From contig CM060733.1 of the NCBI GenBank assembly GCA_030704615.1, positions 4,278,001 to 4,342,000 on the forward strand: DNA of 64,000 nucleotides, written 5' to 3'. The notes below the pieces were generated by a model. That model made no database searches, had not been told where the DNA came from, and was given only the letters and a program-made list of their open reading frames with translations. Numbering within the stretch: the stretch's first letter is position 1; each line of letters opens with the position of its first letter. Source of the DNA: Takakia lepidozioides (lineage: Eukaryota > Plantae > Bryophyta). Both the position numbers and the translations under genes were made by a program. This document shows, piece after piece, positions 4,966-56,875 of the stretch.

Positions 4966-5276
4966 ACTATACCTCAAATATCAGGTATTGTTAGGGGCCA
5001 ATCAAAGGAGTAGTCTGGCTACATCTCACATACTAGGCATGAACTTGAATTAACACGTAACATACCCAAAAGATTGACCGTCCTAAACTATTAAGTACCT
5101 TTTTGGATATATTTATTTTTTATATCTTCCATCGAGATATATTGCTTTGCATATGCACTAACCATTCAAAATAATAATCAAATGTAATTCATCCATAAGA
5201 ATGATGTCTTCATTCATATACATAGTTTGTCATTTGTATGAAATACTTTAAAGTAAATCAAGTATAATCAGAAGTC

Positions 5277-6778
5277 CTATTTATCATCCTCATCACCTGA
5301 TGTGTACCACCATGGTTCATTTTTTGAAGAGTATTTTAAAGCAACTTTCCTATTCACGATATTTCTAGTTCTAGTCAACACTTGCTTTTTGTTTAGTAAA
5401 GCAACCCCTAATTTGAAACTAGAGCATGTAACACTCGCACTCTCTAATGTACCATATGCAAGTTTTTTTTATCGAATGAATATAGAAGATGCGTCTGTTG
5501 TCTCAAACTTGTACATCAATTGATTCACCAAAAAATCTCCCTCTCTGGGTGATCCCCGCTTTGTCCAATAAATAATTGAGAACTCATCATCAGCAGTATC
5601 CACATGCGTTGGAATCTCAGTTGATTTCGTCATATGCAATTGGTGCACAGGAACTTTGCACCCTGGTAAACCAATCCTAATAAATTTTGCAGATTGTATT
5701 TGAGCTTCAAACAATTTGGGAATAAATAATGGATATTTCTTTTGAAATCCCCTCCAAATATTACTTGCAATTGCACCGCCCAAATCACAAAAATGACACT
5801 TCTTCTGCGTTTGTAACTTGACCGCTTGTATACCTATCCGTGTTTTCAGCTGTATTTGTAGAATATGTGTACCCATGGCTTTTTGACTCACCATGTCCCC
5901 GTCTTGTGTCTGTTCCACTCCGTCCTCTGTAAGGTGCTAAAAGAAAATAAGAGTGCATTTCCAGATCGTAAAACACGAACATCTGTCGTTCCCAACAAAT
6001 TCCGTAAGTACATTAAATGTACCTCATCTTCTCCAAAATCTCCAAACTCCTTCACATGGGAATCTTCACACCATATATCATTTCCATCAAATACCACAAT
6101 AGATGACGTGGTGGTCGGATATGCTTTTGAGATAAGAGCCTTCCACGTATCCTTTGACTCTGTATGTGACCAGTATAGAGAAACGCATTTCCCATATTTA
6201 GGAATAGTATTGTATACTCATATCTTGTTTGGTAATCCTAGCTTCCTGATTAACTCAACTAAACCAATAGATCCTCTAGTAACTATACATTTCACTACTA
6301 TGTGATCTACATCTGTATGAAGAGATTTCTGAAAAAACATTTGGGAATTCACTTGTACTGCTAACGGGTATATCACTAACTAATAAACATCTACAAAAAA
6401 CTCTTCTGAAGGAATCAAATGAAGATGGCCATGGAGAGGGTAAACAACTTAGACATCTGTTCTTAACAGAGAAACACATCTCTTGCATAATTTATGGCTT
6501 CTAATCCATAATAGTACACGTTCCAAAAACACTGTTCCTTCTGAGTTTTTATTGAAAAGCTTGTAAATGGTTTTATCACTCAATGTTTTTGGACAAGGTA
6601 AAATATTTTATATGCAATGTTTCCCACGACAGCTTGGATTACAACACCCAGCAATTCCCGGAAATTCATATTCTAGCCTGATAGTACCCAATTCTTCATC
6701 GTATTGACCGCTCAAAAGTGTAATGTAACGTTTACGAATTCGTTTTCTTTTGCTAGATGTACTTGTTATATCTTCCAT
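5277..6778 (-). pseudogene. TET/JBP-like 2OG-Fe(II) dioxygenase pseudogene with Cys-rich N-terminus
   Basis: ATG at 6778, long frame with scattered stops and a frameshift near 5900. C-terminal QLHMTKSTEIPTHVDTADDEFSIIYW..GDF..YKF..SIFIR*KKLAYGT..KLGVAL gives HxD, degenerate HxT (CAT>TAT) and a basic 2OG-binding strand. Confidence 0.65.
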
Positions 6779-7818
6779 AGTTTTCACATGCCCTCTTCAC
6801 CTACAATCTCAAAAACATGACACTAACAAGAATAAGATAGATTTAAAAAACAATGCTCTATATTCACATGTCCTACATTTATAAAAATTTATTAGTTTAT
6901 CATTTATATTTTAATCATCTTTTTAGTTATTTTTAGTTACCATCTTTTTAATCATCACCTAAATTAAAATTATTAAAAGTTAAGTTATCAAAGTTATATA
7001 TTTTATGAACTAAATTAGTACATGTTTACTATTCAAAATAATAATAAAATATTCTAAATTTAACCGTTACTTTATTGCTACATGCAACCAAACATAGGCT
7101 TGTTATTCCACTTAAGTTTAGAAGTGGTCTGGCATCTTTCTATGTTATGGCATTTTTTTTACTTTAAAGTAATTTTTTCTATCTGTTTATTTTTTTTCTT
7201 TTGTGTAGGGTAGGGGACTTGGACTGGCCCATACCCAGAACAACGAGACGATAGCCAGGTGTCGTGCGCAAATTTTGGGGACGGCCCGGTCCGAGTGCCT
7301 AAACCCGACCGGATGCAAAGAAACAACAAAACATTCTTTTGCGCTCAAATTGAATGTGATGGACGGTTCAGATTGGAATCAATTTTTTTTATTGGCAATT
7401 TTCGCCAGTTTTCGACCTCAAAAAATAAAATGGAATATTATGTCAAAATCCCATTTTTTCACGGATGAAATTTCTAATTTTCTCCAAATAAAAAGTAAAT
7501 TATGGATGAATTTACCAAATATTGATGATATATATGGATTATGCTACAAAGGTGGATGACTTTCAGTGGATGAAGAGAATGTACTGCTATTTTCTGCAAA
7601 ACTCTGTTGCCACTCGTGCTGTTTTCCAAATTTCTTAGAAAAAACATTGATTGGAATTGAGAAAAAGAAAAAGATGACATACAGGTGACTTTGGAAAGAG
7701 AATTTTGATCGAAACCTTACAAACCGTAAAGTGCATGGAGAGCTTACGCGTAAGAGCCGTCCACATAAACTAAGAAATTTTTGCCATGTATGGTGTCCAT
7801 TTGCACCTTGATAAAAAC

Positions 7819-8485
7819 CAGTGTTGGACCTATATATAGGTCCAGCCCAGGTATCAATACTGATAGACCATACCCGGCTGGTAGGTAGGGTGGCCAATAC
7901 CCAGGCAATACATATCTTGCTCTATACTATGGTATATACCATACCTGTCTGCATTGGACAAGATTGGTATTGATACCAATATTGCTGCTATGTGAGCCTC
8001 CAAAGACACAGTAGGTGTATGTGTGGAGTCAGGGCAAGGGAATGCAAGGGCATTCATGGCATTTATGGCATCTGCTTTATACTCAATGTGCAATGTGCAA
8101 AAATACAGGTATGGTGTGGTGTATTTTTACAATGTGCAATGTGTGTGTGAGCAATGTATTTTTGTATGTGCATTGTGCTGTAATTGTGATCCATTGTGAA
8201 GGTCAATTCTTTTTCTCAGGTTATTGAATATTTTCTTGAATATACTAAATATCTCATATATATATACCCGGGCAATATTCATACTCCCCCAATATGAGAT
8301 GGAAAAAAATAAATATTGATACCCTACTGATATACATCCACAATTTTACGTTATTGATACCCCTCCTATACCCTACACAGCCCCTTTACCCTAATACCAG
8401 GACCATACCAGTATTAGGAAATGTGGGCCCTTGTGATACCAGGACCAGTCTGGTATCATATTTTTGTGATACCAGTCCAACATTG
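7819..8485. mobile_element. non-autonomous hAT element (MITE)
   Basis: TIRs cagtgttggac / gtccaacattg; 8-bp TSD ataaaaac (7811-7818) / gtaaaaac (8486-8493); many gatacc/ggtatc subterminal repeats. Confidence 0.85.
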
Positions 8486-11510: not shown

Positions 11511-11859
11511 TCTTTTCAAATGTTTATTGCATAGTAATTCACATGATCAATTACGAGTTAATCCTTCTCATGTACTTGGTCATGTTCCCAGTACTTCAGC
11601 TCTCATGGAATGGGACATACTCTGAAGTTGAGATTGATTGACCGCATAGCAGAATTGACCAGTGAACATTCAGTGTGAATAGTTTTTGGATTTCAATTGA
11701 GGAGTAACACCAGTTCATAGATCATATTTTTTTTTGTATCTAGAAAATGATGGTACCATAGGACACTTAAGCTGCTCCAAATTTCACTGTCATAACTGTC
11801 TCTCATAGATCTGAATTGGCATATGTTGTATATGTGGCCATTGCCGGTGTCTTTGCTTT

Positions 11860-14410
11860 CTACCAAGGTCCGGGTATGCTTGGCCGGATATTGAAGTGAT
11901 ATCCGGCGGTTTTGGATGGGTATTTATCCCGTTTAATGAATGTTCTAAAACAAGTCGTATCCATGGATGAGGGTAAAGTTTGAGTGCTTCAAAAAGTTTC
12001 ATTCCGAGTTTGCATAGATTGACACCCACCAACCCTCGATATAACCTATCATGTCATAACATAGAACATCTACCTTATGTTACGTAAAATATAGCACACA
12101 TATACATCTGACATGGTCACATCCAGATGCAAATCTGTCATTCATATATATGCTGTCGAGGTTAGGTACAATTGTTAGGAATTGTTGACTGTAATCCATT
12201 TGCGAAGAAGTTTGCAACAATTTTTTTTGTGGTATGCCCTCATGAATAGACAAAAGTCATTTATGCAGCTTTATAGAATCCATCAACCTACAAAATCGTC
12301 TGGTGATGTTAATAATTGAATGAGATGCAAGCATGCAATAAAAAAAAATGATGCCTCTCGAAAGAAATTAACATAATTTGTGGTGTTCCTTCATCCCTAG
12401 GGATTACGGCCTTTCATTGGACAGTGGACACATCAAACATTCCAACAATTGTGTCGCACCATTTACACTATATCATTGAGTTGAGAGATGTCGTTTTTTT
12501 GAAATACATTGTTTCGCCTGAAATCAAATGCCGAGCAATAACGAACGCATATAAATGAGATTTTCCAATACCTGGTGTACCTACATCCCACGAATCCGAA
12601 GAGTTATGAACACAAAAAAGTTTAAGAAATTGACCCATCATCTCATCCAAGTAAACCCAAAAGCACGAAAAAATGTAAAACGAGTGCGGGTGTCATTAAA
12701 TTGACATTAACATAATTAGAATACTTTTCTTATCCAAATAAAATCCCCAAATACCTGTGTACACAACTGCCAGGATCTTCGAATTGCGACTAAAATATTC
12801 ATCTTTCGCTTCTAAAAGTTTAGAATAACAAGGTCTTAAGAATAGCTGTCTTGAAAAGGTCCTCGAGTCTCCAAGCCAAACTACATCCTCTGGTAGGTCA
12901 ATCACTGAGCTAGGTTCCCCATTGCGAATTTTTGTTTGAATTTCGGGTTCTCGTACGCATCTAACAAACTTTGGTTTTTACAACGTGACTGTAAAACATC
13001 GAGCTGTTGGAGGTCCGCCAAGCAGCATGACCCCCACATTGAAGCCTCAAGTTATTTTCAAGTCCCTCAAAAGCCCTTTTCTATGCGCGAAAGAAAAGTT
13101 GGGGGTATTTGTATCTTCACACTCCCTTGTTTAACCTTGACGAGTTGGAAATGACATTCAAGAGTTTTCAAAACACTCGACCAAGAATGAAGTGGAAGAG
13201 TGGTATTATGTAGCAGTGGGTATTGCAAGGACTGTCTTGAAGGCTTGCCCACGAAACTGTTGGATAATGACCTAAGTATGCAACAATCACGTCAATTTTC
13301 GTTAGTTAAATAAATCAACCTTAGTGATACCTCGTCAACGAGGATGTTATCCACTTTTCCTTTATACAATCTTGGAAAATCCAGATTCTTGATTTATTTC
13401 GCTTGTGAAACACATGATGTGCTTCACTACATTAAATTATTGAATTGATTATTTGATTAGTTATGTTGTTTGGATGGTGCTGGTATTTGTGACTTTGTTC
13501 TCCCTATTGTGTTATTCTTTTGCAAGATACCAATTTGTAAGTATATGAAACTTAGAACTTGTAGGATACAGTAGAGAGCCTATTCGTGTGTCGGAACCTT
13601 ATATCTGTTCTATTTCCGTAAAAACATGGGTACCCTATTCTGATTTTTGTGCTCACCCCTCCATTTTTCTTCGCTCACGTAAGTTGTGCTCAAAGGTGTC
13701 CTTACATTCTACCAAGGTCCGGGTATGCTTGGCTAGATATTGGGGTGATATCCGGCGGTTTTGGACGGGTATTTACCCGTTTAATGAATGCTCTAAAAAC
13801 AAGTCATATCCATGGATGAGGGTAAAGTTTGAGTACTTCAAAAAAGTTTCATTCCAAGTTTGCATAGATTGACACCCACCAACCCTCGATGTAACCTACC
13901 ATGTCATAACATAGAACATATACCTTATGTTGCGTCAGATTCAACACACATATACACCTGACATGTATTTGAGGGCTTTACGAGTGCTAGAGGTGCAAAA
14001 TGGTTGTTTTTAACGTAGATGCAAATGGGCGAGCCAAAAACTCAATGATATAGTGCAAATGGTGTGATACGATTGTTGTTGGGAATGTTTGATATGTCCA
14101 CTTTCCAATGGAAGGCCGTAATCCCTGGGGATGAAGGAACACCATAAATTATGCTAAGTTCCTTCGAGATGCATTATCCTTTCTTTTTTGCATGCTTGCA
14201 GATTCTCATTCAATTATTAACATCACCCGACAATTTGGTAGGTTGATGGATTCTATAAAGCTACATGAATGACTTTTGCCTATTCATGAGGGCCTACCAC
14301 AAATTTTTTTGTTGCAAACTTCTTCGCAAATGGATTACAGTCAATAGTTCCTAACAATTGTACCTAACCTCGGCAGCATATATGAATGATAGATATGCAT
14401 CTAGATGTAC
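11860..14410. repeat. compound duplication: direct repeat (about 11860-12113 / 13709-13963) plus inverted repeat (about 12120-12470 / 14055-14408)
   Basis: Blocks align by eye at high identity. Confidence 0.85.
12468..13000 (-). pseudogene. Crinkler/RHS-type P-loop NTPase gene fragment
   Basis: IDLPEDVVWLG..QLFLRPCYSKLL..AVVYT, then GT-AG intron 12754-12581, then GTPGIGKSHLYAFVIARHLISGET; truncated by the inverted-repeat block. Confidence 0.7.
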
Positions 14411-54029: not shown

Positions 54030-56875
54030 AGGTAGTTATACCCAAATGTGAGCGTTTAAGCAGATATGCCCATACAATTGGTGCAGTAAGGGGAAAAATT
54101 ATATGACTGGATTAGCAATTGAACAAACAGCTTGTGGTATGAATTGCATGAATTTTGGACGAAGTGGCTAATCGATATATATTATCAAAGTGGCAGGGCA
54201 CAAAAATGCTATGCCTGAGCTATAGAGGGTACCATAACTCACTGAAATATTATCTAATATGAAGCCTACATGTAACCTGATATGCACGAGATGTGCACTT
54301 GAAATGGCCCCCACACACCAACTACTACACCCAATAACTCACCCAACAACTCGGCCCACAAGAGCAAAAGATATCCTATGGTGCAGTAGTGAAATAAAGG
54401 AGATCGGATGCATGAACTCTAGTAAGCCCTTGGAAACCGTGAATGTGTGCCAAATGGTCAATCCTGCATGTAAAGTGGACCCCACTCTCCTAGATTTGGA
54501 TTCTTATTTAAGCACATAGTGATCCAAAGTGTGCCAAACTGCGTGCTTTTCCAGCAGAAACCTCACCTCTCACTGCACTAATTTGGACCATCCAAGTGTC
54601 ACAGGCCACGGCTCTCCACCTATTGTTCTCCCGCCACCACCTTGATTCATCCCACCATCTCTGTCGCCTCCCAGCAACTCCTTCCCACCATGGCCCGCCA
54701 TGACAGCAACTCACTCTACAACAGGTGGTCCCGAACCTGGTTGATGCGCCCATGGCACTCCTACGACCTGCAGATGACTTGTGTCTTCCACTCGGCCTTT
54801 GCCCGACGTTTAGCAATAGCAATTTTTTGATTGTGTTTACAGATTGGTGGAGCCCACCCGCACAATGGGGCGATCCATGCATGCTTGGGGGAGGGGTTGT
54901 TTGCTTTGATTGCTGCATGCAGACGTTCTCCTGCCTCACTGCAAGCTCGTGCCGACCACTTGGCGTCGAAGGCCCTCCTGGCAAGTCGCTCTTGTGTTCG
55001 GGCCTTCTTGAGAGAATCTTTCTCGATCTTCTCGGCTGCCCGCTTTGCTTTACCTTGCAGGGTCTCCTCTTTTTTCTGCTCACGAGCTTGGGTTGCTTCT
55101 TCTTTTAGTCTCACTTTTTGCTCTAGTGCTACCAAGTATACATCAGATGTCATTATAATTGACTTGTTGTGGTCTATAATAGGTTCATCTCCTGATGTTC
55201 TTACCCTTCGATTGACTGCAGGAGCCTCTGGGAGCGTCAAAGAATCGAGAGATTGATGAAGGGACCTCTGGCTGGCTGGGAACCATCTCCCAGTCTGCGT
55301 CATCATCGAGATGCACTAAGGACTCCTGGCTACTGCGAAAGTATGGCTGATTGTCATCTACCCTTTCCTGGTCATTGCGCCCATCCTCATCTGGCTCTTC
55401 GACCACCACAAAGTAGTGGTGGTGATTCTCTTGTATGTTGGGCACATGGTTGCCCAACACCTCTTCCACATGAAGGGCAGAAAGTACGTCTTCTACCTCC
55501 CCCTCAGGTGTATCCTTGTCCATTGATTCTGGCCTGATCTCCTCGGTGTGCAGGTCTGGTGTCCCCGGCCCTGAGAAACATTCTGCCGGCCCCATCTTTC
55601 CTGCCATGGCTTCTGGATTCAGAGGCCAGATCCCAGAGGTCTTGAATCCCTTGGCAATGTTGGTAGGGGTTAGTCTTTTTTTCAATGCAAGGGAGACCCA
55701 TTGGGCCAGATCTTCTTTCAACGCTCCTCTTCCTTTATGTGCCATGGTCAAAACATCTCTATATTTCCTAAAGGCAGTCTTAAAGGGCTTGAACACTGCC
55801 ACATCAAGGGGCTGGAGTGCATGGGATGTGTGGGAAGGAAGTGTAATGACATCAAGTCCTATTGATCTTGCTTGCTTGACAACGTCTAGGGTGACGTGTG
55901 AGTTGTGACCATCCAGAATTAGCAAATGCCTGTTTGTAACGGTAATGTCATTGCCCATTGCCTTTGCTGATTCCAGAAAATGTGATATCCACTTGTGAAA
56001 CAATATTACAGTCATCCATGCTTTTCTTTGCATTGCCATTGTTGCTCCAGATTCACATTTGTGAATATAATTGCGACGGAATCTTTTCCCTTTGAATATG
56101 TAGAAGTTTGGGATGTAACTTCATGCAGCATTCATGCAGGTGAGGACGCTCAGCCACTCCCTCTGATCTGGTGTTATAGAATGAACAGATCTGGATCCGG
56201 TCTTGGCCAGCACAACAGCACCTCCGTTTCGCCTAGCTTGGGCCCCGGACTCGTCACAATTTCATATCCTTGTTGGCCCATAGTTGTGCTTCTCATACAT
56301 CAGTTTCAGGTTAGCATAGAACGTCTTTACGTTCTCTGGACATAGTCCCTTGGCCCTCCCAGTTTCTAGTCCTTGAGCTACTCTCAATGAAAGATGTGGA
56401 TGTTGTGACCTGAACCATCTCACCCACCCCCAGCCCGGGATTCCATTTGTGAAAGGTGTGACTCTCTCTTGTGTAACTTCAGCCACCTTCAGACGTAGTT
56501 GAGTTAGTGTCAAGGGATGCCCGATATCTTGCATTTTTTCAATATACTGGACTAGTTCAGCTTCTTCCTTGGCGTTTAATGTCCCTTTGTTGCCTCTCTT
56601 CCTACTGGTAGTAACACCATAAACGTGGTTTCTCAGACTTGTTGCAGGCACTTCAAACATCCTTGCTGCGGATCTGATGCTGTATCCACGGTCAACGGCA
56701 GCCACGGCACCTCGCAATTCACCTAACAAAGCACCATGGGGCCCACAACGCCCATGAAGGAACCTAAATCAGCCCGTTGGCAGTAAGGTCGCCGTTTAAG
56801 GGCAGGCAAAACCACTTTACACCCCAAAAATAGGGGTCCATTTTGAGACCTGCTCATATTTGGGTGTTTCTACCT
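54030..56875 (-). mobile_element. pogo/Fot1-like (Tc1-mariner superfamily) DNA transposon with frameshifted transposase
   Basis: Imperfect TIRs aggtagttatacccaaatgtgagc / gctcatatttgggtgtttctacct with TA on both sides. HTH-psq plus CENP-B HTH (56262-56729); DDE_1 domain KAWMT..HLLILDGHNSH..LPSHTSHALQPLDVAVFKPFK (55185-56039). Confidence 0.93.

Follow-up and report, generated by a model that had tools for sequence, protein, structure and literature searches.

In a moss-like land plant, the minus strand of the window (the whole 64-kb stretch of DNA that was analyzed) carries at 5277-6778 what we take, with a probability of about 85% for the full explanation, to be a dead copy of a multicopy, intronless, CMD1-like TET/JBP gene family. 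CMD1 flips 5-methylcytosine (5mC) from DNA and adds a glyceryl group to it, using ascorbate instead of 2-oxoglutarate. By profile and residue comparison the copy belongs to the TET/JBP family, and the sequence evidence supports well its assignment to a CMD1-like land-plant family about which little is known, of which it is a genuine but dead member. The first-pass annotation had proposed a TET/JBP-like dioxygenase pseudogene at this place; this proposal stands, as CMD1 is the sole match among solved structures and aligns on its Fe(II) triad.

The decayed frame and its lesions

A three-frame reading of positions 5200 to 6900 revealed an intronless, decayed frame of about 500 codons on the minus strand, with its ATG at 6776-6778 and its terminal TAG at 5277-5279. 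The frame lies where it had been placed at first, and every motif quoted from it is present. The report of several stops was right in that there are five in-frame stops, but it understated the damage, since at least two frameshifts are also present. From the N-terminal to the C-terminal end, the copy contains the following features.

5277-6778, minus strand: whole decayed coding region, in three reading frames owing to two shifts; runs co-linearly with P0023, an intact relative of 556 aa
6728-6751, minus strand: basic run KRKRIRKR near the N-terminus; P0023 has a similar run, KKKKR
6476-6649, minus strand: Cys/His-rich N-terminal module with, in this order, GCCNPSCRGKHC (6614-6649), LPC and SHKLCKRC (6476-6499); weak co-linear HMM match
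6608-6610, minus strand: in-frame stop 1, TAA; the relatives have Leu or Phe in this column
6449-6451, minus strand: in-frame stop 2, TAA; column unalignable
6380-6382, minus strand: in-frame stop 3, TAG; column unalignable
6218-6220, minus strand: in-frame stop 4, TGA; the relatives have Ile in this column
5938-5992, minus strand: frameshift 1 zone; HLMYLRNLL (5993-6019) is in the frame before the homology switches, APYRGRSG (5914-5937) in the one after
5781-5859, minus strand: frameshift 2 zone; SKSHGYTYS (5860-5886) is in the frame before the homology switches, GGAIASNIW (5754-5780) in the one after
5280-5801, minus strand: putative CMD1-like TET/JBP dioxygenase domain at the C-terminus, interrupted by stop 5 and therefore in two pieces; HMM E-values of 6e-33 and 4e-7
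5589-5606, minus strand: HVDTAD; His at 5604-5606 corresponds to CMD1 H345, Asp at 5598-5600 to D347 and Asp at 5589-5591 to D350
5565-5567, minus strand: Trp corresponding to CMD1 W358, which blocks 2-oxoglutarate in CMD1; nearly invariant across the family
5469-5471, minus strand: in-frame stop 5, TAA; Ser or Pro in the relatives
5454-5456, minus strand: Tyr (TAT) replacing the second iron-binding His (CMD1 H397); the next Gly-Thr is kept (YGT, 5448-5456), and the Thr corresponds to CMD1 T399

The copy can be followed along the intact relative in a first frame to about 5993, in a second over 5937-5860 and in a third from about 5780 to the end. The second-frame stretch APYRGRSG...SKSHGYTYS matches APYIGISG...SKSHGYSTH in P0023. 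The basic run near the N-terminus looks like a nuclear localization signal. Across the family, the Cys/His-rich module follows the consensus C..NP.HG..C..(C/S)HKxCxxC; relatives have a second CxxC pair that is absent from the window copy. The module has no match in Pfam and is probably zinc binding.

In the C-terminal domain the window copy retains H-V-D (5598-5606), the equivalent of Asp350, the Trp and the Thr, and the motif FKLGVALLNKK lies at 5385-5417. The distal iron-binding His has become Tyr, a replacement that had been proposed from the sequence and is confirmed by our reading of the codon. With five stops, two shifts and a Tyr at the second iron ligand, the window copy is unable to encode an enzyme.

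Homology of the window copy to a rare protein family

To place the copy we made an HMM from 16 relatives in other organisms, with the window excluded, and used it to scan the complete six-frame set of 2,733 window segments; pieces of the copy were searched separately, and X marks the breaks where they were joined for the tree and the HMM. The scan gave four significant matches, all of which lie within 5277-6778 on the minus strand and are co-linear along the model.

5472-5936, minus strand: HMM match, E 6e-33
5280-5468, minus strand: HMM match, E 4e-7
5891-6217, minus strand: HMM match, E 6e-6
5788-6012, minus strand: HMM match, E 9e-5

Two further matches, weak and also co-linear, fall on the Cys-rich part, and there is no second copy of the gene elsewhere in the 64-kb window. 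A tblastn comparison of the intact P0023 with the window copy gave an E-value of about 1e-23. A contig of 2.3 kb (L001) encodes this 556-aa protein in a single open frame, and the protein aligns with the window copy throughout, from the basic N-terminus over the Cys/His-rich module and the middle domain to the C-terminal domain.

The family is sparsely represented in the databases. An exhaustive HMMER search with a 155-aa piece of the window copy against 1.84 billion representative proteins recovered 21 relatives (best E-value, 1.1e-10), none of them with a Pfam domain; the cluster members of these relatives and a profile search enlarged the family set. Pfam returned nothing usable for any of the seven stop-free pieces of the window copy, phmmer found no match to the 155-aa piece in the PDB, and a word-indexed protein search found none for this piece or for full-length P0023. 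With the family profile, the word-indexed search returned only further unnamed family members. Two metagenome locus scans with the family, a tblastn search of phage genomes with the family member P0036 and an Rfam search of the window were likewise without a match.

Intact family members span 440 to 556 aa. Those of the type found in subfamily A, the AT-rich and mostly decayed set of family members, have 500 to 556 aa and consist of a basic N-terminus, the Cys/His-rich module and middle domain, and a C-terminal domain predicted to be an Fe(II) dioxygenase. In the tree, the window copy falls inside subfamily A on its own branch. A near-intact copy is present on a 356-kb contig (L002) that also bears an auxin-binding-protein gene and hence comes from a plant. 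Further decayed copies recur with identical sequence in many JGI metagenome samples, as would be expected of host-plant DNA.

Residue-level match to CMD1

A profile of the C-terminal domain, compared with 177,635 distinct PDB sequences at E-values of up to 10, had a single match, CMD1 (7cy4), with an E-value of 1e-7; a second PDB profile search with a larger family alignment again returned CMD1 as the sole match (E 2.5e-8). A grouping with AlkB or prolyl hydroxylases, which the first-pass annotation had set against its own reading, was not what we found: at the sequence level, the family profiles matched no AlkB, prolyl hydroxylase or JmjC chain among the 177,635 PDB sequences. Animal TET, NgTet1 and JBP were not matched among the PDB sequences either.

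In CMD1, His345, Asp347 and His397 are the three Fe(II) ligands, Asp350 reads N4 of 5mC, and Thr337, Val342, Ile356, Trp358, Phe371 and Thr399 contact vitamin C (PMC7854593). With CMD1 numbering taken from the PDB alignment at an offset of 374 (MBP fusion), the H-x-D and H-G-T motifs of the family are in register with the ligands H345, D347 and H397, and this triad is present in the family. The alignment also keeps D350, T337, V342, I356, W358, F371 and T399, which brings to ten the functional CMD1 residues that line up and are conserved across the family, all within only 69 aligned residues; the alignment does not reach R244, F245, H249 or the C-terminal segment R410-R418. Trp358 of CMD1 occupies the site of the 2-oxoglutarate-binding Arg side chain in TET2 and NgTet1 (PMC7854593), and the conservation of the equivalent Trp in the family would point away from canonical 2-oxoglutarate chemistry.

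Language-model features (ESM Atlas) led to the same family. For the 155-aa piece, Tet_JBP was assigned to 22 of the 30 nearest clusters with a score of 0.94, and for P0023 the Tet_JBP clusters scored 0.84 to 0.85; the nearest clusters in the Atlas are basidiomycete Tet_JBP proteins. Pfam did not lend the same backing to the first assignment, as its Tet_JBP profile (PF12851) matched neither the window pieces nor any of about 40 relatives at E-values of up to 10. As we read it, this missing match shows divergence of the family and is not evidence against homology. The Tet-like profile PF20515 had a single weak match, to the relative P0010 (E 0.053).

Two AlphaFold2 models from shallow alignments (22 and 29 sequences) reached pLDDT values of 40.5 and 47.9. 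At this low pLDDT, the models have two helices first and six beta-strands after them, and searches with the models by Foldseek against the PDB, by wide VIA-align and by shape in the Atlas returned only noise. The missing Tet_JBP match and these models, which leave the DSBH fold unconfirmed, would also fit a domain from a different family of 2-oxoglutarate-Fe(II) dioxygenases, such as AlkB or the prolyl hydroxylases, or no dioxygenase at all, with the match to CMD1 misleading. We consider this highly improbable. Such a reading has to contend with two family profiles that single out CMD1 from PDB sequences including many AlkB, P4H and JmjC proteins, with the ten functional residues in register, with language-model features that independently indicate Tet_JBP clusters and with a relative that weakly matches a Tet-like profile. 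Hence, we continue with the CMD1-like TET/JBP assignment.

Copy number, flanks and base composition

When DNA contigs of the same organism were aligned to the window at 80% likeness or more, the gene appeared as part of a longer repeated unit.

5147-7140, no strand assigned: approximate repeated unit of about 2 kb, consisting of the gene with about 130 bp after and about 360 bp before it; limits approximate

Over 5136-7139 the summed contig depth was 100 to 240, about 4 to 8 times single copy, with single-copy flanks at 21 to 39. The 5' flank of the gene (6806-7139) is more repeated than the gene itself, with a summed depth of 350 to 710. The limits of the unit were taken from one paralogue whose match ends at 5147 and from the depth, which is single copy again after about 7140. 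Several paralogues in the same organism are represented by contigs that are 84 to 90% identical (10 to 16% of positions differ), and together with the contig depth this identity indicates multiple dispersed copies in one genome. A plant-metagenome run contained pieces that are 95 to 99% identical to the unit.

The surroundings are rich in repeats, in line with the initial description of the gene as embedded in transposable-element debris; by contig depth, the locus lies amid repeats. Very high-copy repeats occur just past the unit at 7307-7640 and 7808-8475, with a depth in the thousands versus about 30 for single copy, and have short matches in sequencing runs that we guessed to be RNA. Nested repeats are present at 11846-12482 and 13695-14408, with direct repeats of 49 to 125 bp that are 1.85 kb apart. 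Beside these are inverted arms of 31 to 180 bp that span about 360 bp and are 87 to 92% complementary, perhaps part of a foldback or MITE-like element.

From two small sequencing runs that we guessed to be RNA, of 33 and 48 million letters, no contig falls on 5136-7139, though neighboring repeats were touched. These data weakly support the view that the window copy is silent.

Decay of the copy through deamination of 5mC, as suggested at first, was not borne out. The change from CAT to TAT that replaced His by Tyr does fit a C>T transition, but an origin of the stops from CAA, CAG and CGA is not supported: instead of Gln or Arg, the alignable stops 1, 4 and 5 face Leu/Phe, Ile and Ser/Pro, although the evidence from these columns is weak because the relatives used are only about 30% identical. 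The CpG o/e of the window copy is 0.62 versus 0.58 for the whole window, and no particular sign of deamination stands out in the copy. CpG depletion is far stronger in the subfamily A genes of other plants, with a CpG o/e of 0.15 to 0.27, the pattern expected of long-methylated repeats.

How the copies may have spread

The first-pass annotation went further and had a mobile element carry the gene. What we found of this is the multicopy unit of about 2 kb; the hallmarks of an element are missing. Pfam searches of the 14 longest flanking open segments identified no transposase or other transposable-element protein in the roughly 5 kb to the left and right, the unit is surrounded by no terminal inverted or direct repeats clearly above shuffled controls, and it has no definable Helitron ends. 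No partner gene common to the related loci was found.

Several other observations concern repeats or possible partners. The gene is flanked by a direct match of 23 bp, identical at 21 positions (5161-5183 and 7028-7050), with its two halves about 1.87 kb apart; it is borderline above shuffled controls in AT-rich DNA and may be due to chance or a trace of the ends of the unit. A remnant of a pogo/Tc5-type transposase with matches to DDE_1 (E 1e-18), HTH_Tnp_Tc5 and HTH_psq is present on the minus strand at 55185-56729; it is 49 kb away and has no link to the gene copy. The gene copies on L002 and L018, which are 95% identical and come from one assembly, were considered as transposed copies and rejected as such, being alleles or homeologues with transposable-element indels. 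A 2.4-kb repeat with 77% identity between L002 (10835-13354) and L003 (2097-4504), both contigs from a single plant assembly, was considered as a shared mobile unit; it is absent from the allelic L018 and is hence a separate insertion beside the gene copy on L002.

The window copy could have been carried by a DNA transposon, be it a Helitron, a Mutator or an element of unknown type, which bore its own 5mC-modifying enzyme against silencing. Transposon carriage is plausible by analogy, given the precedents in Chlamydomonas (DNA-1_cRei and Helitron2) and in fungal transposons. It would fit a multicopy unit of about 2 kb with a still more repeated 5' flank at 6806-7139, as a transposon end might be, and the AT-rich subfamily genes on other plant contigs, whose CpG depletion is typical of long-methylated repeats. 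Against it stand the absence of an element protein within about 5 kb, the pogo-like transposase being so far off, the absence of an inverted terminal repeat above shuffled controls and of a partner gene common to the related loci, and the nature of the 95% identical pair as alleles or homeologues of a single locus; moreover, the copies inside a genome are old and diverged. We therefore entertain the cargo reading tentatively, at somewhat less than even odds. It is compatible with our best explanation and adds to it a claim on how the copies spread.

A different route would be that the copies are segmental duplicates of a host CMD1-like gene, or processed retrocopies of it made by LINE machinery, which then decayed. 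The window copy is intronless, the repeated unit extends little beyond the gene, an A-rich tract lies just past its 3' limit (about 5100-5128) and LINEs have been noted in the window. However, intact or near-intact relatives elsewhere (P0023 in L001 and the copy in L002) are intronless too, so that the absence of introns need not imply retroposition; the A-rich tract, besides being short, has AT-rich surroundings, and the repeated sequence includes about 360 bp upstream of the ATG, which a retrocopy does not need. We judge this route unlikely.

GC-rich relatives without H-x-D

The profile search also identified a second set of family members, subfamily B, which comprises GC-rich intact proteins of 440 to 465 aa (P0037 to P0042, P0008 and P0017). 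In these proteins H-x-D is replaced by Arg-x-Cys or Arg-x-Gly and a 19-residue insertion is present, while the second His is kept. Their genes have a GC content of 55 to 65% and a CpG o/e of 1.0 to 1.3. Two orthologues, on plant contigs from two species (L004:10001-11398 and L005:10001-11374), share 77% DNA identity, keep a neighboring NCA2-like gene and have a dN/dS of 0.17 at a dS of 0.86. Subfamily B looks like a conserved host gene that derived from the family and lost iron binding, and it is possibly a domesticated pseudo-enzyme.

Discussion

Why would a moss-like plant contain the remains of such a gene? In our explanation, the ancestor of the window copy would have bound Fe(II) through H-x-D...H and would have modified 5mC in nuclear DNA; we infer the substrate, the cofactor and the nuclear location. 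Its chemistry may have been either of the CMD1 type or ordinary oxidation. The copy has since decayed and is one of several diverged copies of the 2-kb unit, located in a repeat-rich stretch.

A wider picture can be drawn, which we regard as doubtful as a whole. Mosses might keep an undescribed CMD1-like TET/JBP branch with its own zinc-finger-like front end, some intact copies of which could write 5-glyceryl-methylcytosine or oxidized 5mC. This branch would spread like a mobile element, and it would also have given rise to a GC-rich host gene without H-x-D (Arg-x-Cys/Gly) under strong purifying selection, a domesticated pseudo-enzyme that maybe still reads modified cytosine. Our literature search found no paper on TET/JBP in mosses, though an older mention is possible. 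Plants are usually said to lack the TET/JBP family. As the host is a moss, the statement that TET/JBP enzymes are absent from angiosperms is unchallenged.

The locus alone adds little, because the copy is dead. It documents the family as multicopy and decaying in this genome, and it helped to reveal the full-length architecture of the family and how it matches CMD1 residue by residue. With a CMD1-like family in a land plant, the question of where oxidized or hypermodified plant cytosines come from would become directly testable, all the more as intact members exist. If true, repeats that carry their own DNA-demethylating enzyme would be a pattern that extends from algae and fungi to land plants.

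Comparison with known systems

Animal TET1-3, NgTet1 of Naegleria and the kinetoplastid JBP1/2 would belong to the same superfamily as the family described here by way of CMD1, with an H-x-D...H Fe(II) center that acts on 5-methylpyrimidines in DNA. The family profiles matched CMD1 and none of these enzymes.

Fungal transposons encode TET/JBP proteins (PMC12730594). CMD1 is located on the transposon DNA-1_cRei, and most other TET/JBP genes of Chlamydomonas on Helitron2 families (bioRxiv 10.1101/2022.06.16.496473). The transposon-borne genes of fungi (on KDZ, hAT, IS3EU and other elements) and those on Helitron2 likewise occur as many diverged, often decayed copies in repeat-rich DNA. In contrast to them, the window copy and the related loci have no detected transposase, terminal repeat or Helitron end, and the family is not recognized by the Tet_JBP profile of Pfam.

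The closest comparison is with CMD1 of Chlamydomonas reinhardtii (PDB 7cy4-7cy8). Its product, 5gmC, has been reported from no organism other than Chlamydomonas (PMC12458080). Unlike CMD1, the window copy is damaged, with Tyr where CMD1 has H397, and the moss-type proteins have an additional Cys/His-rich N-terminal module and a middle domain without a known match. CMD1 is itself multicopy and transposon borne, and the 2-kb unit of the window copy is also multicopy. The family shares with CMD1 the iron ligands, the residue that contacts 5mC and six residues of the vitamin C pocket.
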